Below, one piece after another: positions 218-38,930 of a stretch of 64,000 nucleotides of DNA. The stretch lies in NCBI GenBank assembly GCA_965112155.1, contig OZ218113.1. One strand, written 5' to 3'. Numbering within the stretch: position 1 is the stretch's first letter; each line of letters starts with the position of its first letter. Position numbers and translations under genes: made by a program. The DNA comes from Podarcis liolepis. Its lineage: Eukaryota. The notes under the pieces are model-generated. The model was not told the origin of the DNA, made no database searches, and saw only the letters and a program-made list of their open reading frames with translations.

Positions 218-692
218 CCGTATTTTTCGCTCTATAAGATGCACCCGACCATAAGACACACCTAGTTTTAGAGGAGGAGAACAAGAAAAAAAATATTCTC
301 TCCCTCTCTGCGCAGCGCCCCTTCAGCGAAGCGGCAAGAGAAGTGGAGCCCCTTCCATTTCTCCTCCCGTTTCACTGAAGGGGCGCTGCGCAGAGAGGGA
401 AAGCTGTGCAGCGCCTCTCCAGCAAAGCGAAGCCTGGAGAGCAAGAGGGATCGGTGCGCACCAATCTTTATGGCCAGGGCACACCATCAAGATGAGCGCA
501 CGGGAGAGATTTTGGAAAGTAGATTTGTAATTTACTGACTTCATGTTATATGTTGTTGTTGTTGTTTAGTCGTTTAGCTTCGCGTTGCTTTCGCTGAAGC
601 CATGGAGCCTGCATTCGCTCCATAAGACGCACACACATTTCCCCTTACTTTTTAGGAGGGGAATAGTGCGTCTTATAGAGCGAAAAATATGG
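218..692. mobile_element. Non-autonomous Tc1/mariner-superfamily (Tc2/pogo-like) MITE
   Basis: TIRs CCGTATTTTTCGCTCTATAAGA ... TCTTATAGAGCGAAAAATATGG with flanking TA duplications (216-217, 693-694); inserted into a CR1-like remnant; related copy at 35216-35475. Confidence 0.85.
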
Positions 693-779
693 TAGCCAAT
701 GGGGGCCTTTCCTACTGAACCTTCTGCACTTCAAAAGAAATTCCCACTGCACCACCGATCCCTATCATTGCATACAATA

Positions 780-892
780 GCAAACGTTTCACAGTCTGCC
801 ATTATTGGGTAGCCCCCTGGGCTATTGTCCCCCCCTGGCCAATCACAGGGCTCAGAGCCGGCCCCTCATTTGAATGCTTGCTGGTATATAAG
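780..892 (+). promoter_or_regulatory. Pol II promoter of Arg-rich gene A (inverted CCAAT, CCAAT, ATTTGAAT, TATA)
   Basis: ATTGG 804-808, CCAAT 839-843, ATTTGAAT 868-875, TATATAAG 885-892; all four are conserved with identical spacing upstream of paralog B. Confidence 0.8.
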
Positions 893-962
893 AGCACTGT
901 TTGCATGAGGTCACCAGCATTTGCAATGTGCAGAAAGCCAAGCAAGAGCGGGGAAGAAAGAC

Positions 963-1598
963 ATGGCAGCTCTTAAAACGTACAGGATGTCCTACTCGCT
1001 GAGGAACAGGAGGAGGAGCTGGCTGAGGAGGCGTGGCCTGGAAAAGAGGAGGAGGAGCTACGAATGGAGGCGGAGCCGAGAGCGGAGGCGGGGGTGGAGC
1101 CGCCGGCCTAGTAGGCCACAGAAGACACCGGCCAGGAGAAGGAGAGTTCTGCCCAAGTCCAGGAGGAACACCTGCATTGTCCGGTTCCCGAGGCGAGGCT
1201 ACCGGATGAAGTGCCCCTTGATGTCCTGGTGCTTCAATAGGTGGATGCGGGGCAGCAGCAACCCTTCTCATGGGGCCAGATACTCCCTGCGCTCCAGCCG
1301 GCCGATGGTCCTTCGGAGCCGTGCGCCCAAGAAGTGCCCGCCAGGCCCTCGCCGCTGCCCTGACTTCCTTCAGGCTGCCCTGAGGGAGATAGCGAGCAAG
1401 AAGCGCGCCAAGTGGGTGGCCTCTTCCCTCCCCAAGAAGCGGCGGCGTTACTCGGACGAGGAGATTTTCTACCGCTTGGCGAAACCCTCCAAAGCGGAAG
1501 AATTGGGAGAGGAGGAGAGCGGTGACAAGGACGTGGAGAGCTCAGCTGCGGGGATAGCCCAGTCTGCAGAGTGCGGACTTCAAGAGACCATAAGCTAG
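963..1598 (+). CDS. Intronless Arg-rich basic protein, paralog A (211 aa, family unrecognised)
   Basis: ATG in Kozak context gacATGG about 70 nt after the TATA box; open to TAG 1596-1598; 24 Arg in the first 66 aa; two blocks shared with the ORF at 4103-4633; AATAAA at 1995-2000. Confidence 0.8.
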   Translation: MAALKTYRMSYSLRNRRRSWLRRRGLEKRRRSYEWRRSRERRRGWSRRPSRPQKTPARRRRVLPKSRRNTCIVRFPRRGYRMKCPLMSWCFNRWMRGSSNPSHGARYSLRSSRPMVLRSRAPKKCPPGPRRCPDFLQAALREIASKKRAKWVASSLPKKRRRYSDEEIFYRLAKPSKAEELGEEESGDKDVESSAAGIAQSAECGLQETIS

Positions 1599-1994
1599 AG
1601 ACAGACACCCCTCTCCTCCTTCTCGGAACAGCAAACAGGCCTGGGCAATGATCCAGAGGAGAAGAGAGGAAGAAGGGAATAATAACCATAATTTTAAAAA
1701 GTAAGAATCCTGTGTTGAAAGATCCAAGAACTTAAAGGAGACCACCTGCACCCATATTCCAATCCTGATTTTTAATTAATTTATTTTTTAGGCTGTTTAT
1801 CTCTGCCTCAGTGGGGGGCATCGGGAAAGTTTTTTTGAGCCATGGCATAGTCAGCGAAGAACATGGAAAGGTTATCCACCTCTCTCCCTTGCTAGCAAGA
1901 AGCAAACAAATCGGCTCCCACTGCTATGAGAACAAAAGGATTGTTGTTGTCCAGGGTGCTCCCTCCTCACCCCATGAATTCTTCTTGAAATACT

Positions 1995-2000
1995 AATAAA
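1995..2000 (+). terminator. Polyadenylation signal of gene A
   Basis: AATAAA followed by TCTGGATCTTTTGGAAC and a GT-rich tract; the same context is conserved in paralog B. Confidence 0.7.
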
Positions 2001-3392
2001 TCTGGATCTTTTGGAACACATGGGTTGCCTTGTGGAATGCTGAGGAGCAATTGGGTTGGGTGGGGAATAAGGAAGAAAAGGCTATGAGTGACCACTAGAC
2101 ATGATGGCTATGTTCTCCCTCCACTGTCGGAGACAGTACGCCTGTGAATACCAATTGCTGGGAATCGCAAGGCGGGAGGGAGCTGCTGCTGCTGGGCTGG
2201 GCTAAAATAGGCCATCATCCTGATTCAGAAGGACTCCCCTTAGGTGGGTGTAAGAGTCCAAGATCACTTCTGCTCACTAAGACCCAGCGGCTACCGTTTA
2301 GGGCTGGGCCTGGTTTTGAGGGAGTCCTTGGCAGAGTCCCCCCCCAACCCCTATTCTTTGCTTACTGGCCGTTGTGGGAAAGGAGAAGACAAGGCGGGGC
2401 AAGAAGGAATCTCCAGCAGTCCTGACTGGTGCCCCTTGGGGACTGGTAGGGCAGGTGTCTGGGAGCCAAACAGTAGGGGGAGCCAGAACGAATCACAGGC
2501 AGTCCCAATTAATTCTCGCTTTGTCCCCATCCTCTTCCCTGCTGAGTTCCACAGTAAGGAGAAGGCTATCGATGAGAACAGGTTGCTGGACTTGATAGGC
2601 CATTGGCTTGATCCGGCAGCCTCTTCTAACGTTCTTGCAGGGCGGCGCTGAGACCCAAGGCCACAATCAAACCACACAACTCGCAGAGTGATTAACAATC
2701 AGTCGTTCCTCACAGGGAACTCTGGGAATTGTAGTTCTCACAGGGGATACAAGGGGTCTCCTAACATCTCTCAGCACCCTTAACAAACTGCAACTCCCAG
2801 AATTCTTTGAGGGAAGCCATGTTTGTTTAAAGTGGACTCATGGTGATTCACATGTAAACAAAGGAGGAAGCTGAAAGCCAGGGTTGCTCCCTAGGATGGA
2901 AGGCAGGCAGGTGGGGCTGTCTGAGGTTGGTGGGCCAGTGCCCCATTCACCAAATAAGTCTCCACTGGGGGGGGGTTGTTTTGCTGTTGCTATGGTTGAA
3001 CAATTGGGAGTCATAATACCTCTCCCAAGCATAATATTTTATGCCTCCATCATGTCACCCAATCAGTCTTTCCTGGCATTCCCCCCTCAATTTCAAAAGA
3101 CACAAATGTTGTAACCTTTCCTTATAAGGATCTCCCCTCCCCCCCCCAAAAAAAATACCTGAACATTTCTGGGTTAAGGAGTCTTGCCTAGAGTTTATCC
3201 CACTGGCCTGAAGCCATAAATGAAGATGGAAACAAAAAAATGCTCAGGGTGTACCACTTTTTGAGTTCTTGAGATTGTTCTTCTCCGCTTAGGATTTTCA
3301 TTGGTGCTGCTTTATATCATATACCACCCATGATAATTGAATGAAGGCTAATTGAATCATCATAAGTAATGACTGCATATATGTGTCTTTCT

Positions 3393-3615
3393 AAAGCACA
3401 TCAAAGTGCAAGTAGATAAATAGGTACCACTCCGGCGGGAAGGTATACGGCGTTTCCGTGTGCTGCTCTGGTTCGCCAGAAGCGGCTTAGTCATGCTGGC
3501 CACATGACCCAGAAGCTATACGCCGGCTCCCTCGGTCAGTAAAGCGAGATGAGCGCCGCAACCCCAGAGTCGGCCACGACTGGACCTAATGGTCTGGGGT
3601 CCCTTTACCTTTACC
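3393..3615 (+). mobile_element. Sauria/Squam1-type SINE, 5' truncated
   Basis: Matches the 3' two-thirds of the full copies in this window; ends in a (ACCTTT)n tail. Confidence 0.9.
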
Positions 3616-3662
3616 TTTTTAACAAGTTCAAGACACAATGTATACGTTTCAAAAGATCCAGT

Positions 3663-3668
3663 TTTATT
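3663..3668 (-). terminator. Polyadenylation signal of gene B
   Basis: AATAAA on the minus strand followed by ACTGGATCTTTTGAAAC, homologous to the gene A polyA context. Confidence 0.7.
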
Positions 3669-4102
3669 ATTACTCCAAGATGAAGTTCCTGAGTGGGGCT
3701 GGGAAACACACTTTGGATACAATGACAAAGCCCTTTTCATTTTCCTTCAAGCGGTAGCCAATTTCTGTCTGTTTCTTGTTAGCGAGGAAAGGAATAATTA
3801 TTCGTTCAAGGGGTAGGTTCAGAGATGCGGGCCTTTTCTGAGGTGACGGGTGTCTCTTGGTTATTTATCCAATGGCTCAAATTTCTTCTTTTCTCCTCCT
3901 GCAGGCATTGATAAATCTATTAGTTCTGCAAAAATGGCTCCAGGACAGGATCGGAATGTGGGTGGTGACACGCCCCTTCAGTTTCCTTGGATCTTTTGAG
4001 CAGGCCGGTGGCTTATGTAGTATACATTTTGCCTCCCTCTTCTCCCTTCAGTTTTCTGTCAGGCCTGCTTGCTGTCCTGAGAAGAGTGAGGGAGATGTTC
4101 GT

Positions 4103-4633
4103 CTAGCTCGATACCTCCTGGAGCTCATTCGCCGTTGGCTGAGGTACTCCTGGAGCCATGTTCTCTGCCCCTGGGTTGGCGGGCGAGCCCTGGTCTTTTG
4201 ATCTGTAGGGCTTTGCCAACTTGTAGAAAATCTCCTCATCGGAGTAACGCTGGCGCTTCCTGGGGGCGGCTGGCGCCACCCACTTGGCTCGCTTCTTGCT
4301 CGCCACTTGCCTGAGGGTGGTGTGGAGGAAGTTGGGGCAGGAACAAGGGTGCTGCTGATTCCGCTGCCTGCCCAGCCGCAGGGACATCTTGTGGTGGACA
4401 TCCGCTATGCAGGGGCTCAAGGCGGCTTTGGCCTTCTGTAAGGAAAGGATGTCGTCCCGCATCTTCCGGTTGAAATACCAGGACAGGAGAGGGCATGATG
4501 TTAAGTAGCTGCTTCTTGGGAACCTGATAATGCAAACGTTCCTCCTGGGTTTCTGAGGTAGCTTCCCTCGTCTGTTCAGGATCTTCTGGGCTCTGCTTTG
4601 CTGGCTCTTTCTACCCCTTTTGATGGAAGCCAT
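4103..4633 (-). CDS. Intronless basic protein, paralog B (176 aa, family unrecognised)
   Basis: Strong Kozak gccATGG; open to TAG; shares RRNxCIxRFPR..CPLxSWxFNR and CPxFL..LR..ASKKRAKWVA..RYSDEEIFYxLAKP with paralog A. Confidence 0.8.
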   Translation of the reverse strand: MASIKRGRKSQQSRAQKILNRRGKLPQKPRRNVCIIRFPRSSYLTSCPLLSWYFNRKMRDDILSLQKAKAALSPCIADVHHKMSLRLGRQRNQQHPCSCPNFLHTTLRQVASKKRAKWVAPAAPRKRQRYSDEEIFYKLAKPYRSKDQGSPANPGAENMAPGVPQPTANELQEVSS

Positions 4634-4708
4634 GGCCTCTTGCTGGTTCGTCCTCTCCAGCTCAACTGCCCCACCTGCAAATACTGGTGACCTCCAGCCA
4701 GCACTCCT

Positions 4709-4821
4709 CTTATATACCGGCAGGCATTCAAATGAGGGGCTACTTCTGAGTCCTGTGATTGGCTGGAGATGAACAATCGCTCAGGGAGCTATCCAATAAT
4801 GAGGGACTGTGAGGCATTTGC
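4709..4821 (-). promoter_or_regulatory. Pol II promoter of gene B
   Basis: On the minus strand: ATTGG 4797-4793, CCAAT 4762-4758, ATTTGAAT 4733-4726, TATATAAG 4716-4709; start-to-start spacings of 35/29/17 nt are identical to the gene A promoter. Confidence 0.8.
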
Positions 4822-5714
4822 CTCTGTGTGGAATTATGGGGGTGGAGTCAAATATTCAGGGCACAAGCCAACATAACACAAGCCACTATTTAAACTTGGC
4901 ATCCATGGAAAATTCTGCATCAACCCAGCACTATTTTACACAGTAAACAAGTTTGAGTGTGCTTAACTTTGGCTGTTCCTTTTCTTGTATCTGAGTGTCA
5001 TATTATTATTATTATTTCAAAAATCAGCATCAACATTCTTCTCCACCCCCCTTTCCTAGCTGCAGGGTAAAATATTTTCTTTATTTTGTGCCATTTGGAG
5101 CTGTTGTGTTTTATTAAAATCTTTTATTCTTCTGAAACACAAAAATACATCAGATGTTCTGAATTAACTTTCCGCTATGCTTCATTTCTACACGCTGGCT
5201 CATTTGTAAATCTCTTTTCCTTTTTGGTAAACAAAACATTTTTATTTAAAATGTTCTTTTTTAAAAAACAACAACAACCCCACCAATGGTCCCTTTATTC
5301 AGCTGAAATAAAGTGGGGATAAAAAGTTCTGAACATGTTCAAAATATTTTGTTGTTACCTGATGCAGTTTGGAAACAAGAAATTCCTTCCTTGGGGCAAT
5401 AATCAACACTCCAAAAAACATTGGAATATAAGAAGGGCCCTTCTGGATCAGGCCAGCGGCACATCTAATCCAGCATCCTGTTCTTACAGTGGCCAACAAG
5501 GTGTCCCAATTCCACCTTTAAATCCTGGTAATGTCCGGGGAAATCCAGACACATGGCAGCCCTAATGAAAAGCCAGCTATGATGGGAGTTGTAGTCCAAA
5601 GAGGCTGTGCTTGGTGGAGCTGATGGGAGTTGAAATGGGTAGGGCTGTATCTTTCCATCTTTGTGCATATAGCAGCTTCGCTGCTGCAGTCATATATTGG
5701 AGTGGTCTTTCATA

Positions 5715-6129: not shown

Positions 6130-6799
6130 AATTGTCCTTGCAAGTTTCCTAGAAGCAGTTGGCTTCTTGCTGTGGAAAACAGGACGCTGGGTGGATTTGA
6201 TCCAGTAAGACTCATAAACCAGGTGGAGGGAAAGGCGAATGAAATGAAACTCCCTCTGTAGAGATTTGTAAGCAAGCCTCACTTGCGTGACTGCTTCCAA
6301 TTACCGCTTTGTTTTGAGTATGGGAAGAACATCCCTCCGGCATTGACTCTGGACAGTTTCTTCCCCCTTCCCTGCTCTCTGTGGCTTGGACCACTTGACG
6401 CAGCCATCTGGATTGTGTTACCAACTTGAGTCCTTGCTTGCAGGTCCTTCTTGCCAGCAGAGCAAAGCAGAACCTTTTTGATTCATATCAGCCTCTTCCA
6501 CATTTCATCTTTCTGCTTCTTTGTAACTTGGGGGTCTCCCTTTAAGCACAGGGTTGGGGGACTGGATGCTGCCGGTGGGTCAGATCCCTAACTTTGTCCA
6601 ACTTTTGTCAGTGCCGATCAGCTGATCAGAGGTTGCAGCAATCTCCTTTGGAGACAGGCTTCCAGTGCCAATCAGCTGCAGTTAGCGCAGAATGCTGCAG
6701 CGCGATTGCTAACAGGAGTGAGGCCTTGTTATCGTGCAATACCTATTCCCAGAGATGTGCACTGATTTCCAATTTGCAATTTCCCTTAAAACTGAACAG

Positions 6800-6909
6800 G
6801 TCCAGAACTGTCCCACATCCATTGACTGGGAGGGCTGCAACCCACAAAAACTCTACACCTTGATTCTCACAGACCTGGATGTTCCCAGCAGGGCGGATCC
6901 GAAACTCAG
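6800..6909 (+). CDS. PEBP1: PEBP1/RKIP-like gene, exon 2 (110 nt)
   Basis: aacag|GTC...CTCAG|gtgag; translates [36 protein letters not shown](R), colinear with PEBP1 exon 2; not captured by the ORF track. Confidence 0.9.
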
Positions 6910-7188
6910 GTGAGAGAGACCACAAAAGGGACATTCTCTCCCTTTGGCCTACTCCTGTCTTTAGAGAAATATGCATGTTTTCAATGCCCATAATCCAGGG
7001 AGGGTGGAATAACTGTGCAGCCACACAGGGAAGGACCATAGCTCAATGGTGGGGCAATACTGAGCTAGATGGATCAATTGGTCTGACTTTGGTGTTTGGC
7101 AGCTTCCTCTGTTCTTATCATCTTTGAGTTATTTAGAGCACTTGTACATTGCTTTTCAGCTGAAAAGCACATGGTGCACTGCTGAGTT

Positions 7189-7545
7189 AAAGGTAAAAGT
7201 AAAGGGACCCCTGACCATTAGGTCCAGTCGTGACCGACTCTGAGGTTGCGGCGCTCATCTCGCTTTTCTGGCCGAGGGAGTCGGCGTACAGCTTCCGGGT
7301 CATGTGGCCAGCATGACTAAGCTGCTTCTGGCGAACCACAGCAGCGCACGGAAACGCCGTTTACCTTCCCGCCGGAGCGGTACCTATTTATCTACTTGCA
7401 CTTTGACGTGCTTTCAAACTGCTAGGTTGGCAGGAGCAGGGACCGAGCAACGGGAGCTAACCCCGCCGCGGGGATTCGAACCGCCGACCTTCTGATCGGC
7501 AAGCCCTAGGCTCAGTGGTTTAACCCACAGCGCCACCTGCGTCCC
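7189..7545 (-). mobile_element. Sauria/Squam1-type SINE, full length
   Basis: tRNA-like head GGGACGCAGGTGGCGCTGTGG with B box GGTTCGAATCC on the minus strand; (ACCTTT)n tail. Confidence 0.92.
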
Positions 7546-12726: not shown

Positions 12727-12872
12727 AGGTTAATGTAAATAAGCTGAACATTTTCATACTCATTTCTTTAAAAAAAAGAAGTCAGAAAGGGTTGCTTTTC
12801 TGTACTGAGAAAAAACAACACAGTTTTGACAGTCGTACCAAAATCTTTGCATTATATCCTTGCCCATTGTAG

Positions 12873-13090
12873 GACTTCACCGCTATGTGTGGCTGGTCTA
12901 CGAGCAGCCGCAGCGACTGACCTGCGACGAGCCCATCCTGAACAAACTTACCGCTGCCAAGCGCGAGAAGTTCCGAGCCTCGTCCTTCCGCAAGAAGTAC
13001 GGATTGGGTGCGCCTGTGGCAGGCATGTGCTACCAGGCCGAGTGGGACAGCCACGTGCCAAAGATCTACGAACGGCTTGGCGTCAAATAG
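12873..13090 (+). CDS. PEBP1: PEBP1/RKIP-like gene, terminal exon 4
   Basis: tgtag|GA CTT CAC CGC; (G)[22 protein letters not shown]...[35 protein letters not shown]; AATAAA at 13118-13123 and 13290-13295. Confidence 0.93.
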
Positions 13091-13454: not shown

Positions 13455-14298
13455 ACACAGAACAGATTGAGGTTGAATCCTGACAAGACAGAATTACTGT
13501 CTTTGGGGGACAGGGGGTTGGCTGGTGTGGAGGACCCCTGGTCCTGAATGGGGCAACTGTGCCCCTGAAGGACCAGGTGTGCAGCCTGGGAGTAATTTTG
13601 GACCCACAGCTGTCCATGGAGGTGCAGGTCAATTCTGTGTCCAGGGCAGCTATCTACCAGCTCCATCCGGTACACAGACTGAGACCCTACCTGCCCGTGG
13701 ACTGTCTCACCAGAGTGGTACATGCTCTGGTTATCTCCCACTTGGACTACTCCAATGTGCTCTCCGTGGGGCTACCTTTGAAGGTGACCTGGAAACTGCA
13801 ACTAATCCAGGATGCGGCAGCTAGACTGGTGACTGGGAGACCAAATAACACCGGTCCTGAAAGACCTACATTGGCTCCCAGGATGTTTCTGAGCACAATT
13901 CAAAGTTTTGGTGCTAAACAACCATGGCTCAGTATACCTGAATGAGTGTCTCCACCTCCATCGTCAGCCTGGACACTGAGGTCCAGCTCCGAGGGCCTTC
14001 TGGTGGTTCCCTCCCTGCAAGAAGTGAGGTTACAGGGAACCAGGCAGAAGGCCTTCTTTGTAGTGGCGCCCGCCCTGTGAAACGCCCTCCCATCAGATGT
14101 CAAGGAAATAAACAACTATCTGACGTTTAGAAGACACCTGAATGCAACCCTGATTAGGGAAGTTTTTAATATTTGATGTTTTAGCATGATTTTAATATTC
14201 TGGTAGGAGCTGCCCAGAGTGCTGGGGAGATCTGGCCAGACAGGGCGGGGTAAAACTAATACATTATTACTATTATTATTATTATTATTATTATTATT
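13455..14298 (+). mobile_element. L2-clade LINE 3' fragment, 5' truncated and decayed
   Basis: NRLRLNPDKTE, LGVILDPQL, HALVISHLDYSN, LQLIQDAAARLVTG motifs typical of the L2 ORF2 C-terminus; ends in an (ATT)n tail. Confidence 0.85.
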
Positions 14299-15139: not shown

Positions 15140-15775
15140 TTCATAAAATCTTGAGTTAGAAGGGACCCCAAGAGTCATCTAGTCCAGCCCCCTGCAATGA
15201 AGGAATCACAGCTTAAGCATCCATGACAGGTGGCCATCCAACCTCTGTTTAAAAGCCTTCTGTGACCCAGGTAGTGTGCTCCACTGTCAAACAGCTCTCA
15301 CCATCAGAGTGTTGTTCCTAACGTTTAGTCGGAATCTTCCTTCTTGTCCTTTGAATCCATTGGTTTGGGTCATCTGTTCCGGAGCAGCAGAAAACAAGCT
15401 TGCTCCATCTTCCAGGTATTTGAAGATGCCTCTCATATCACCTCTCAATTCTTCTCTTTTCCAAACTAAACATACCCCAGCTCCTTCAACCGTTTGTCAT
15501 TAGGCTTGGTTTTCAGACCCTTGATCATCTTGGTCGCCCTCCTCTGCACAGGTTCCAGCTTGTGAATATCCTTCTTAAACCGTGGTGCCCAGAACTGGAC
15601 ACAGGACTCCAAGTGGGGTCTGACCAAGGCAGAATAGAGTGGTACTATTTTGGATGCTGGATGTCTGTTAAAGCAGCCTAGAATTGCATTAGCTTTTTTC
15701 TTTATTTCTGTTGCATCGCACTGTTAACTCATGTTAAGCTCGTGGTCCACCAAACCCCATGATCCTTTTTGCAAT
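15140..15775 (-). mobile_element. CR1 LINE 3' fragment
   Basis: Reverse complement contains CR1 motifs (GTCCAGTTCTGGGCACC = [18 protein letters not shown]) and a CR1-type 3' end. Confidence 0.8.
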
Positions 15776-22262: not shown

Positions 22263-22656
22263 AAGGAAACAATAAAAATATGCAAATATTACTAAAAACA
22301 ACAGCAAACCGCCATCAGTTCTCACCCCAGGTAAGGTGACCACCAGTGCTTGTTAATATTTTGAAGAGCAAAAAAGAGGACACCATGTTGATTCTCATTT
22401 TATATGTAGGCTATAGAAACGGTGACATATTACTGAGGGGGGCAGGAGAAGAGGAAAGCAAGCATCCAGTTATGACTATGTCTCATCCAGAAAGTATAGC
22501 CAGAGACATTTTGGCAAATTTTCAAAAAACCCACCCAGACAGAAACTTTACCCTGAAAAAGAGGACGTGTCCTGGAAAAAGAGGACACATGGCCACCCAA
22601 GATAATATGGAACCATTTGTGGGGTTTGTGTGTGTGGAGCCCAGAGCTGCCCTCAC

Positions 22657-22869
22657 CGCTTGCGATGCCATCATCTCATTGATGCTCTGCTCGTACTGCT
22701 CAGCCAGGATGGCAAGCTTCCTTGTCTGCTCGTCCTTCAGGCCTTTCAGAATAGTTTTGTGCTCACTCTTTGGAGTCACTTCCAGCTGGTGGTTCTTGAG
22801 TGCTTTATACTGCTTGGTTTGCACTTTGCAAGTGTCCTGGAACTGCTTCTTGATCTGCATTTCCATGGC
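22657..22869 (-). CDS. TAOK3: TAOK3 coding exon (213 nt)
   Basis: tgcag|GCC...GCG|gtgagg; [25 protein letters not shown]...INEMMASQA. Confidence 0.96.
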
Positions 22870-23725
22870 CTGCAATGGAAGGCAACAACTCTGGGTGAGG
22901 TTACACGTGGCTATTTAAACATCGACGTTATCTGCATATCTCTATACATTATTTAAGAACGGTACGATATTCATGCAGAAGTTTTACACTAAAGAAAATG
23001 TAACATCCCTATAATGGGCAAATTGTGCTCGAGAGAACCATGCCTCTCTTGCAAGCTGCTTTCTCCACGAAACTATTGCCTGTCTCGAACCCATATCTCA
23101 TAATTTCAGCTATTTGCTATTTTTTGTGTGAGATAATTATCTGCTTTTTCCCTTTCACGTGGAGAACAGCAGTTACCAGATCCCATGGAAGGCAGGGGTG
23201 CCGACTTAATAAAATATCTGGGGGGCAGGTAAGCACATAATTGATCACATGATATGCCACATGCACTCTATTTGAATGACAATGCCCATTAACTTGGGGG
23301 GGGCTGACCTCTTCAAATATTTGGGGGGGGGGGGCTAAGGGACCTCGCTCCCTAGGAGTTGGCTCCTATGATGGAAGGTAACTGTAAGTGAACGACTCCT
23401 GAGCTATTGACACCAGTAAATCCTCCTCTGCTGAATGAATATATGAACAGGCGCCAAAATGGTAGCATGGATGTGCTAACAGCACCAAACACCAGGGATG
23501 GGGGAACATACGGCACTTCAAAGGTGGCTGGACTCCCATTTCCCTACCTGCATGACCAATAGTCAGGGATTATAGGAACCACAGTCCAATGACATCTGGG
23601 AGACCAGATTCCCCATCCCTGCCACACACACATGGAATTAGCAGGGTGGCTAAGGTCAAGCAGTTGACTTTGCACCGCTTATCCCTATATCCCAGCTAGA
23701 CCGCAGCCTTCGCCTAGTTACTAAC

Positions 23726-30280: not shown

Positions 30281-30723
30281 TATATTTTTAGGTGCCAGGC
30301 GAAAACGTTCCGCTTCAGCCAGGCCTTTGGTTGATTAATATCCTACAGCCTTTTAAATGTGGGAAGGGTGGGGGAGGTTATTGTTTTGCTGTTTTGTTTT
30401 ACTTATGTTTTTGTCCTGTATTTTATTCTCTGACCTGCCCTGAGATCTCATGCTGAAGGGCGGTATATAAACGTAATAAACCATAATAAAACCATAATAA
30501 AATTCTGACCCAGATACTACATCCTCGTTGCATGAGTATGGGAAGATTCAGCTCTTGTCAGGACAATACAGGCAGCAGGCTTCCCAGGTTGGTTACATGA
30601 ACAGCATGGCATATTGACCAGTTGCAAGTAGTTGTCTGTATTCACCTTATATTTTCCCTGGGTATATTGGGGCAGGGTGGGAAAGGGGGGTGGCGAAGAG
30701 GAGAGGAAAGCAAGAGGTGGTAC

Positions 30724-30927
30724 CTCCCGAATGTTCTGCTGCTCCAACTCGTGCCTCCTGATCATGGTTTTTCGCTTGAAGAAACGGCAGTTTTTGTCAT
30801 AGTAGAGTCTCTGCTGGCTGAGAAGATGTGCCTCCTCTTCAGCCTGTGTGTGCTGCAGGTTCTCTTTGTGTTTGGAAATCCTCTCTTGCTTCTCCTTCTT
30901 CGGTGTGCTGTGATCCTCGTTCATCTC
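30724..30927 (-). CDS. TAOK3: TAOK3 coding exon (204 nt)
   Basis: tccag|GAG...GAG|gtacc; [26 protein letters not shown]...ELEQQNIRE. Confidence 0.96.
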
Positions 30928-33041
30928 CTGGACGTGCACAGAGGAAAGGCCAAGAAACAAAGTCATTTGTTGGTTTCATGATGGGGAGGGGTAAAAAAAA
31001 CAAAAAAACGTGATGCCTCCCCCCCCCCACTACCATCTGTACGAGCTTAACAGCAAACAGAGGGTCCTCCTTTGAATCCCCTTCCAAAAGGGTTTTTAAG
31101 CCCATTACCCCTCAAGATGCCCCTGCTGGGAGCTAAGCAGTTTATACAAAACATACAGGAGCTCCAAAGACGAGGGGGGAGGGAGGGAGAGAGAGGGGGA
31201 GAGAATGACTAAAAGCTCACAAACCAGGCTGGAATCAAGAGTCCAGAATCCGAAATTAGTAATCTTTGGGGCTCTCCTTTACTGAACTGCAATTCCCAGA
31301 GGGAAGCCATGACAGTTAAAGTGGTATAAAACTGATAGATGTTGGAAGCGAAGAGTGCAAAGTAAAGAAAAACAGGTCAGGCCTCCTTTGGCGGGGAAAA
31401 AAAGCACTCGCTGAACGTTTGGTTCTAATCTTAGGCCACTTGGAAAGTTGTGGAGGGACACATACAGTATCACAATCAAAACTGGGGTTTATGTAGGGTT
31501 ATTATAACGCGGCAACTTTTCCATCACAGAAAACGGTTGCACAAACTAGACTTCAACCAGGCTTTGGTGCCAGAGAAACAACAAGTGGCTTAATCGGCCA
31601 ATATCATAGCCAAGGATTTCTGCACTGGAGCTCTACATGCCTATTCAAGAGACTTAAGTGTGAAAGAGACATGTGCCGAAAGATGAACTCTGCATGTGGA
31701 AGCATGTGACTGGGAGGTGACGCACGCAGGGGTTCTAAGCCCTTTTCCCTCCACTGCCACATGCCCATAAGGTTGGGTGATTGGCTGCTGAAGTATGCCA
31801 AAGCCTCTGTGTTACTCTCTTTAACAACTCTATCATTTTTCTTTAAAATCCCAAAAAGGACATGAGAAATGTCTACGTCTTGCCCCAGAAAATTCCTGCC
31901 TCATCTCCAGTTTTTCCTTGGCCAGTACGCAGACAAGACGCAGACACCGCTGAGCTTGCAACTAAACAAAACTATGCCCCAACACCTCGTGGAATGAGGC
32001 ACCTCAACCGGAAAAGGAGGAAATCTCCTTGGTTTTGCAGAAGAAGCTGAGTCCTTCACCTGAAGCTACAAAACCAGCATTTCATTCACGACTATGGCCA
32101 ATGCTAATCTTGTAGCATTCAGGTTGCCTCTATCAGAAATAGGATGCATGGGACCCCCAGAAGAATTTGATGTAGTGTATTTGATAGACATTATTTTAGA
32201 AACCTTTAGGACATCCCCATAAGTTACTGCAATGTCCATGTTGCAGAAGAGCTCTTGAGTCTGAGAGGCAAAGTGATTTGCCAATAGCAACTCAGTGAAT
32301 TAAGGGCAGAGGTGAACTTTGTCTCAAAAGGTTGAATTGGGAGTGGTGCAGGAGACATGGCAAATGTCACTTCGCTATGTATCACAACTTTCAAAGCTGT
32401 TTATTTCTGGGGCCCATGGGTCATAGCCAGGGGTCTGGCTCATATGTGTGCATTTCAAGTGTTATATCTCAGTTATAATCTATTTTAGGAGTTGTGAATA
32501 CAGGATTCAGGCATGATAGCTGCTACGCATTTAATAATATGGAGAACAGGAGCTGTTTCTCTCTCTGTGTGTGCTTAAGATCAGTATTAAGTGGGACGTG
32601 GAATTAAAAAGTCCATCACTGCTAAGGGTTCCCTGTGACTCTTAATGAAAACTTTCTCTCATGCCTTTTATTTCCTCAGCTACAGAACAGTAACAGCATC
32701 TGGAGGCTGGATGACTGAAGTAGTTTTGAGCCTGCACAATATATGCATTTTATGACAAGTGCCTAAAATAGACTTGTGCAGGGGAACCACAAAGGGGAAA
32801 AAAAGCAGTGCAGCTTAGGAAGTTAATGCAATTATCCTAAAAGCTCTTTAGCTGCAGGTATTTAGTGAAGCAGGGTTGGTTTTTTTAAAAGGAAGTTTAA
32901 AAAAGAAGTTTGCAGTGATTTCAGAGCACAGAGTCCCAATTCTATCTGAAAGAGAGCATTTTGTATAGTACACTTGTTTCTAAATACAATTTAACATATT
33001 CACATGTAGCATTTTTAGGTGGGCACTAAAACTTAGGTGTG

Positions 33042-37569: not shown

Positions 37570-37945
37570 TTAAAAAATTGCCATCATGTTCCCCCGCTCA
37601 GTTTTCTCCATATATTGGTCATTTAAGCTTCCCTCACAGGTCTTGTTTTCCATACTGCTGATGATGTTCACTGTACTCCTCTTAAATTGTTCTAAGTTGG
37701 CTACATCCTTCTTAATATGTGGCACCCAGAACTGGACACAATACTCCACACGAGATCCGATGAGTGTAGAATAAAGCAGAACTAATGCTTCTCGTGATTT
37801 GGTTCTATTAAGGTCAACTAAAATCATGTTTGCCTCTTTAGAAGACACATCCCAGAGCTGATCCATGTTCAGCTTGTTATAGACATCAGTCCTGAGGTCC
37901 TTTTCACACACATTACTTGCCAAGCCTGGCATCTTCTATTCTACA

Positions 37946-38140: not shown

Positions 38141-38585
38141 GATAAAAGAGTCATTTCAAATGCTGGAAAGAATCAGGCCTAGGACAGAGCCTAGTGGTAG
38201 CTCACTTGAAACTTCCTTCTAAGGTGGAAGAATTCTGGTTCATGCCATTTTAGTATGGAAGTATGCATGAGTGTGATCTTTTTGACTGCCCTGATGTAGA
38301 AAAAAACACGTTGAAAAGCAGCACATCGCTAGGGATTACGCAAACATATGACACCACCTCTATTCAATCTAAAGTGGTGCAGACTACAATTCTACGTTTA
38401 TGGAATGCTCTCCTCCCATGGAGAACTGCCTGGTGCCAACTTTGCCTGCCACTGAAAAATATGACATTTGGGGAGCACCAATGATTGGATGTTTTTATTC
38501 TGACTGTTTTTTTAATGCGTCTATGCAGTTTCTACTGTGTCACTGTATTTTGCTCTTGTAGATCACTTTATGACTGTCTGTTGTA

Positions 38586-38930
38586 AAGTAAAGGGACCCC
38601 TGACCATTAGGTCCAGCCGTGGCCGACTCTGGGGTTGCGGCGCTCATCTCGCTTTATTGGCTGAGGGAGCCGGCGTACAGCTTCTGGGTCATGTGGCCAG
38701 CATGACTAAGCCGCTTCCAGCGAACCAGAGCAGCGCACGGAAACGCTGTTTACCTTCCCGCCGGAGCAGTACCTATTTATCTACTTGCACTTTGACGTGC
38801 TTTCAAACTGCTAGGTTGGCAGGAGCAGGGACCGAGCAACGGGAGCTCACCCCATTGCGGGGATTCGAACCGCCAACCTTCTGATTGGCAAGTCCTAGGC
38901 TCTGTGGTTTAACCTACAGCGCCACCCGCG
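38586..38930 (-). mobile_element. Sauria/Squam1-type SINE with TSD
   Basis: 13-bp direct repeat ACTGTCTGTTGTA at 38573-38585 and 38934-38946. Confidence 0.92.

Follow-up and report, generated by a model that had tools for sequence, protein, structure and literature searches.

In a 64,000-nucleotide stretch of the Podarcis liolepis genome (GenBank assembly GCA_965112155.1, contig OZ218113.1; hereafter the window), we found two convergent, single-exon, TATA-driven and polyadenylated protein-coding genes, here called A and B, which go back to an old event that duplicated an entire transcription unit in inverted orientation. The gene pair is real, expressed and conserved, and its products are members of an uncharacterised squamate protein family. 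Gene A encodes a protein of 211 aa from an ATG at 963 (+ strand, 963-1598) and gene B one of 176 aa (- strand, 4103-4633); both open reading frames (ORFs) were confirmed at the coordinates given in a preliminary description of this DNA. On the strength of their sequence features, we consider it moderately probable that A and B represent a lineage-restricted family of nuclear, nucleic-acid- or chromatin-binding proteins. A putative action in male germ-cell chromatin is a guess, and one that we regard as possible but doubtful.

The A and B proteins are 43% identical over 175 aa (BLASTP, E 2e-40), and the homology of the two genes is not restricted to their reading frames. A repeat finder detected three collinear inverted matches, which pair the promoter and leader (760-925 with 4676-4841; 166 nt, 78%, gap-free), part of the coding sequence (CDS; 1346-1501 with 4194-4349, 76%) and the poly(A) region (1979-2017 with 3646-3684, 85%). 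In addition, the 3' untranslated region (UTR) of gene A (1599-2020, + strand; AATAAA at 1995-2000, inferred end at ~2020) is homologous to that of gene B (3643-4102, - strand), and the two can be aligned up to and beyond AATAAA. The spacer between the two poly(A) sites (2021-3642), which includes a high-copy repeat at ~3398-3620, has no paralogous match and lies outside the duplication. The preliminary description had proposed a whole-gene inverted duplication, and indeed promoter, leader motif, coding blocks and poly(A) region were all matched between A and B. A tblastn search of the 64 kb window revealed no third copy of the gene.

The promoter and start-site region of gene A (760-925, + strand) contains an inverted CCAAT box (ATTGG at 804), a CCAAT box at 839, CATTTGAATG, a TATA element at 885-892 and the conserved start-region motif GAGGTCACCAGCATTTGCA at 907-925. 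The leader and promoter of gene B (4634-4841, - strand) carry GAGGTCACCAGTATTTGCA, a TATA element at 4709-4716 and CCAAT boxes at 4758 and 4793. In the alignment of the upstream regions, ATTGG, CCAAT, CATTTGAATG, GGTATATAAGAG and GAGGTCACCAG(C/T)ATTTGCA are identically spaced in both copies. The promoter core CATTTGAAT-TATATAAG also appears to be conserved in a snake, as judged from the letters of a protein: the snake-like entry P0003 has a 57-residue N-terminal 'extension' reading HLN..RYIR, and translation of the window promoter gives a matching HLN..RYIR reading (ORF 4576-4776), indicating that the 'extension' is a read-through of the CATTTGAAT...TATATAAGAG region.

To examine expression and copy number, four sequencing runs were placed on positions 500-5300; X1 and X8 derive from two related species and separate studies, and X5 and X15 are DNA-like. 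In X1, gene A was covered without gaps by a single 924-nt contig of depth 554 (994-1908), and gene B by a single 1162-nt contig of depth 4854 that is colinear with the genome over 3643-4663. X8 yielded contigs at 1046-1871, 3853-4006 and 4077-4650 with depths of 244-1283. In both runs, high-depth contigs (244-4854) were confined to 994-1908 and 3643-4663, depth was 0 to 0.5 over the unique intergenic sequence at 1949-2431, and the promoters (822-982 and 4686-4846) had a depth of zero, as expected at 822-982 for sequence upstream of the transcript. The X1 contig of gene B ends at position 3643 in a loose T10 on the + strand, 20 nt past the complement of AATAAA (TTTATT on the + strand, 3663-3668), which marks the poly(A) tail of a minus-strand RNA. 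Because the contigs are limited to the transcription units, promoter depth is zero and one contig ends in T10, X1 and X8 are RNA runs. Transcripts of both genes are polyadenylated, and no splicing occurs within the CDS or 3' UTR. The term 'intronless', as used in the preliminary description, holds over this part of the genes, where RNA contigs and genome are colinear, and the view that these are real expressed genes is borne out by the presence of both transcripts in RNA runs of two related species.

While X5 behaved as low-coverage DNA, X15, a DNA run (92% of sampled words), showed a depth of 21-25 over both genes, similar to that of the unique flanks, indicating that A and B are present once each and do not belong to a dispersed element. 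In contrast, the summed X15 depth over the neighbouring repeat (3398-3719) reached millions, which likewise speaks against a high-copy transposon-like ORF.

The two genes also bear the signature of selectively constrained coding sequence. Comparison of gene A in the window with the X1 contig revealed 20 differences, 11 synonymous and 9 non-synonymous (over ~140 and ~460 sites, respectively), corresponding to a dN/dS of ~0.25 versus a close species. The binomial p for the synonymous excess was 0.002-0.05, varying with the assumed neutral synonymous fraction. Between the paralogs, dN/dS calculated by the NG86 method was 0.32 overall, 0.18 in block 1 and 0.24 in block 2 (the conserved blocks are described below), and we give the span for the paralogs as 0.18-0.35, again below 1. 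Moreover, ORF length, start and stop are kept from geckos to snakes.

A word-indexed search recovered four proteins at 53-59% identity, including entries from Varanus komodoensis, Naja naja and Phrynocephalus forsythii, and phmmer against 1.84 billion representatives returned 12 matches, with E-values for the family of 3e-54 to 7e-14. The phmmer match P0011, a 439-aa repeat protein, was judged spurious. The collection listed no protein from the window's own genome. Every source-named match came from a squamate, lizards and snakes alike: Naja naja E2320_012572, Phrynocephalus forsythii JRQ81_007660 and JRQ81_007661, two Sphaerodactylus townsendi UniRef entries and the Varanus komodoensis entry. 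These homologs show 36-63% identity (53-63% for the gene B orthologs in Varanus, Naja and Phrynocephalus), are of equal length and share three blocks as well as N- and C-terminal motifs with A and B; MAxxKR at the N-terminus and ELQEAxS at the C-terminus are conserved among Varanus, Naja and Phrynocephalus, and the three internal blocks throughout the squamate members. Based on alignment A2, we defined the family by the motifs RNxCxIRFPRxxY...CPLxSWxF, FLxAxL[KR]EVAxKK[RK]AKWV and KRRRYSD[ED]EIFYRLA, in this order and within a basic protein of 176-224 aa, and A, B and the named homologs all carry them. The Varanus ortholog (P0001) is labelled 'putative ATP-dependent RNA helicase' and has no precomputed Pfam domain in the source table; this label is probably an artefact of basic low-complexity sequence.

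In a maximum-likelihood tree, window A grouped with Phrynocephalus 007661 and P0008 (support 93/97), window B was placed with Varanus and Naja at a weak fork (84/88), and the two Sphaerodactylus gecko proteins were sisters. The B-like JRQ81_007660 and the A-like JRQ81_007661 have consecutive locus tags, our sole evidence for synteny of the orthologs, and thus form an adjacent pair as in the window. Together with the A-like clade that includes Phrynocephalus, this adjacent pair indicates that the duplication predates the split of the window lineage from agamids. The gecko copies reflect either an independent duplication or homogenisation. More distant relatives were found in P0013-P0015, proteins of 223-224 aa with 28% identity to B and a different C-terminal tail; with P0014 as the sole query, only P0013 and P0015 were recovered. 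Regarding the earlier claim of a lineage-restricted squamate family, it stands for all source-named matches, all of which are squamate, and P0013-P0015 might be non-squamate. Restriction of the family to squamates is therefore provisional.

The preliminary description could not assign the proteins to any characterised family, and none of our searches established such a link. Pfam gave zero matches for A, B and seven relatives at E <= 10, as did PDB sequences queried with a family profile (E <= 10), and queries of the ESM Atlas with B and P0014 produced zero usable matches. Foldseek, run with a low-confidence model against the PDB, returned nothing at E <= 0.001 and one meaningless row at E 9. 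PHROGs had zero matches, and 24 pattern matches of alignment A1 among IMG/VR viral contigs left 0 confirmed; as both collections mostly cover viruses of microbes, they amount to a weak viral test. Rfam reported zero families over 400-5400. No relatives outside the family were obtained through Pfam, the PDB or the 1.84-billion-protein phmmer search, no source-named non-squamate match emerged from a profile search of 5.8 billion sequences, and our literature search found no paper on the A/B family.

Several known classes were considered and rejected for A and B. Protamine P1 was dismissed since the Protamine_P1 profile was unmatched and the proteins differ from protamines in length and Arg content (~50-100 aa, ~half Arg). 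TNP1, TNP2 and HMG-box sperm proteins were dismissed because the respective Pfam profiles were unmatched, and a linker histone H1-like identity because Linker_histone was unmatched, a globular domain was absent from the AlphaFold2 model and Foldseek was empty. A transposon or viral ORF was rejected in view of two copies in 64 kb, a depth of 21-25 and the lack of matches in PHROGs and IMG/VR.

Both proteins are highly basic, with a net charge of +41 and a pI of 11.6 for A and of +26 and 10.9 for B; Arg accounts for 45 of 211 residues in A (21%) and 20 of 176 in B (11%). The N-terminal third is rich in Arg and Lys. In the A type it has been expanded by codon repeats and includes RRRS/RRxS-type sites: the N-terminal extension of A (aa 1-65) is Arg-rich, with short AGG/CGG-type codon repeats at 998-1102, and the A-like P0007 and P0008 have an expanded Arg-rich N-terminus as well. 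Block 1 (A aa 66-96, nt 1158-1250; B aa 29-59, nt 4457-4549) is a conserved amphipathic helix, RNxC[IV]IRFPRxxYxxxCPLxSWxF, with two conserved Cys. Binding of zinc by Cys was considered and dropped, since only two Cys are invariant in close relatives and these are absent from distant members.

Block 2 (A aa 132-176, nt 1356-1490; B aa 99-143, nt 4205-4339) contains a second conserved helix, CPxFLxAxLREVAxKKRAKWV, which leads into a pattern typical of a bipartite nuclear localisation signal (NLS), namely KR, 10 residues and KRRR. The basic runs lie at 146 and 158 in A and at 113 and 125 in B, and (R/K)KR(R/Q)R ten residues after KKRAKWV is conserved among the relatives, a spacing that corresponds to the textbook bipartite nuclear-localisation pattern. 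In A, block 2 includes both this pattern and RRYSDEE, and in B it reads KKRAKWV...RKRQRYSDEEIFY. RRYSDEE directly follows the bipartite pattern, fits PKA-like and CK2-like consensus sequences as a pattern match, and is succeeded by a short helix, EIFYRLA. A reading of YSDEEIFY as a PIP box was dropped because its spacing is off consensus. The C-terminal tail, variable and of mildly acidic character, terminates in ELQEAxS. An AlphaFold2 model based on a 14-sequence alignment had a mean pLDDT of 59 and a pTM of 0.21, without a globular fold, and placed helices at 42-79, 101-118 (block pLDDT 89) and 132-140. According to this model, the proteins are predicted to be largely disordered, with three conserved helical blocks.

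The conserved bipartite pattern and a pI of ~11 agree with the nuclear destination suggested in the preliminary description, a sequence-based prediction then as now. Nuclear location, nucleic-acid binding and phosphoregulation would fit together as follows. The proteins would be imported into the nucleus via the bipartite signal, and phosphorylation of the serine beside it may tune import or binding. Once in the nucleus, the basic tracts could bind DNA or RNA electrostatically, and the conserved helices might make specific contact with a partner protein.

Several observations weigh against this interpretation or against the simple gene structure associated with it. The NLS and the phosphosites are pattern matches, and the N-termini, being Arg-rich and devoid of acidic residues, resemble mitochondrial presequences. 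Basic disordered proteins can also be cytoplasmic, as is the case for sperm-head cytoskeletal proteins. At the 5' end of gene B, the X1 contig has 140 nt past 4663 that match nothing in the window; the first 25 nt of this extension were without a match in the 64 kb at <=3 mismatches. A chimeric assembly, a difference or insertion particular to that species, or an exon lying upstream and beyond the window would each account for the extension, so that gene B may possess an upstream non-coding exon. The leader of gene A may include an ATG at 926-928 that is out of frame. This ATG is located ~10 nt past the start expected from the TATA element and opens a 16-codon frame (926-976) that overlaps the main ATG at 963; the matching leader of gene B has no upstream ATG.

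How do other explanations compare with a nuclear, nucleic-acid- or chromatin-binding family? It is very improbable that the loci are non-functional, whether as transcribed non-coding RNAs in which ORFs occur by chance, as pseudogenes in decay or as the remnant of a transposon or virus. Although the GC/AGG-rich part of gene A also contains long antisense ORFs, a non-functional origin is at odds with ORF length, start and stop being conserved from geckos to snakes, with a dN/dS well under 1, with the single-copy DNA depth and two copies in the window, and with the absence of matches in PHROGs, IMG/VR and Rfam. Alternatively, A and B could be fast-evolving orthologs of an otherwise-named vertebrate gene, possibly an ancient retrocopy, that were missed since only short helices are conserved. 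The distant P0013-P0015 might be non-squamate, and single-sequence phmmer is short-reaching for disordered proteins. However, neither phmmer (1.84 billion) nor the profile search (5.8 billion) gave a named non-squamate match, the family profile matched nothing in the PDB at E <= 10 and the ESM Atlas yielded no usable match. To our knowledge, there is also no gene at the corresponding mammalian position beside PEBP1, and we regard a hidden ortholog as decidedly unlikely.

Another candidate is a basic protein of broad expression that works in the nucleolus or binds RNA, for instance an accessory factor of ribosome biogenesis or of ribonucleoproteins (RNPs) that is lineage-restricted or over-diverged. 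Arg/Lys tracts containing RRxS, a bipartite NLS and high depth in each RNA run that includes the genes would suit such a protein equally well. Yet core nucleolar factors are usually ancient and recognisable, whereas Pfam, PDB and phmmer revealed no relatives outside the family, and the paralog-specific expansion of an Arg tract together with fast linkers would be unusual for housekeeping factors, which makes this option rather unlikely. In a specialised form of the nuclear reading, A and B are spermatid or sperm nuclear basic proteins, analogues of transition or accessory protamine-like proteins, that would be transcribed in haploid cells from a compact promoter with CCAAT/Y-box and TATA elements and would be deposited on DNA as histones are removed. 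This is a possibility that we take seriously without thinking it probable. The very basic composition, the protamine-like Arg-rich N-terminus of the A type with repeated RRRS, and variable regions that evolve fast next to conserved blocks all agree with it, as do small, intronless, duplicated and lineage-restricted genes whose transcripts reach very high depth in part of the runs; testis-biased expression is frequent among young intronless genes confined to one lineage. On the other hand, Pfam identified no protamine, TNP1, TNP2, linker-histone or HMG-box domain, Arg content (21% in A, 11% in B) is far under that of protamines, and a dN/dS of ~0.25 is below that typical of sperm nuclear basic proteins. 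The conserved amphipathic helices, moreover, suggest specific protein contacts over bulk DNA coating.

The broader nuclear reading, with or without a germ-line role, can also be set against known systems. The true homologs of A and B are the squamate hypothetical proteins of Naja, Phrynocephalus, Sphaerodactylus and Varanus, none of which has been characterised. TNP1 and TNP2 are likewise small and very basic nuclear proteins with compact TATA-type genes and high transcript levels, and TNP2 combines Cys residues with a basic C-terminal region. Both are marked by expression limited to post-meiotic spermatids and by a transient stay on condensing chromatin. However, TNP genes have an intron, lie at other loci and show neither sequence nor Pfam matches to A/B, which are 3-4 times the length of TNP1 and, unlike TNP1 and TNP2, have conserved amphipathic helices. 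The N-terminal Arg runs of the A type, interrupted by Ser, resemble the RRRS phosphosites of protamines, but Arg exceeds 45% in protamines as compared to 21% in A and 11% in B, and A and B are much longer, possess an acidic tail and helical blocks and leave Protamine_P1 unmatched. The MST-HMG-box sperm nuclear basic genes of Drosophila are similarly taxon-restricted and duplicated, and their products small and basic (PMC9917458). They are reported to differ in having an HMG box and often evolving under positive selection, whereas A and B lack an HMG box and have a dN/dS of ~0.2-0.35 (PMC9917458).

Sauropsids have been described with one cysteine-free protamine and zero transition proteins (PMC13756071). 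A and B might be founders of a class of chromatin proteins that is specific to squamates and acts in spermatids or sperm, functional analogues of mammalian transition proteins in which the A-type Arg tract was gained after the duplication; this is a speculation that we consider fairly doubtful. If a germ-cell chromatin role is true, A and B would fill a gap in the repackaging of DNA in reptile sperm; if it is false, they still represent a nuclear basic protein that is unexplored and found only in one large order of vertebrates. Either way, the family is strongly expressed and conserved across geckos, agamids, monitors and snakes. It lacks a Pfam model and any characterised member, and its fold is neither solved nor open to confident prediction. 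Few annotated genomes list it, one of them under the misleading name of a helicase. The pair is a clean duplicated transcription unit whose promoter, leader, coding blocks and poly(A) region can all be traced in both copies, and is useful for the study of promoter and paralog divergence.

The surroundings of the gene pair are compatible with a PEBP1-TAOK3 neighbourhood. PEBP-like exons lie on the + strand at ~6.8-13.1 kb (e.g. 6734-6913 and 12860-13090). One of them gave a weak match to Pfam PBP (E 0.05), the last is recognisable as PEBP1-like, and the exon at ~6800-6913 has TDLDVPSR where PEBP1 carries a DPDxP-type motif. Long open exons on the - strand at ~22.5-31 kb (22525-22914 and 30520-30975) encode TAOK-like coiled-coil sequence and are compatible with a TAOK3 gene arranged tail-to-tail with the PEBP-like gene. 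Fragments of ORFs resembling the C-terminal part of a LINE reverse transcriptase were present at 13484-13942 (+), 15466-15627 (-) and 37573-37935 (-). The very high-copy interspersed repeat at 3398-3620, similar pieces of which occur near 500-700, 7187-7339 and 38516-38881, was abundant in the RNA runs and is probably a squamate SINE. A 19-nt hairpin was found at 614-684.

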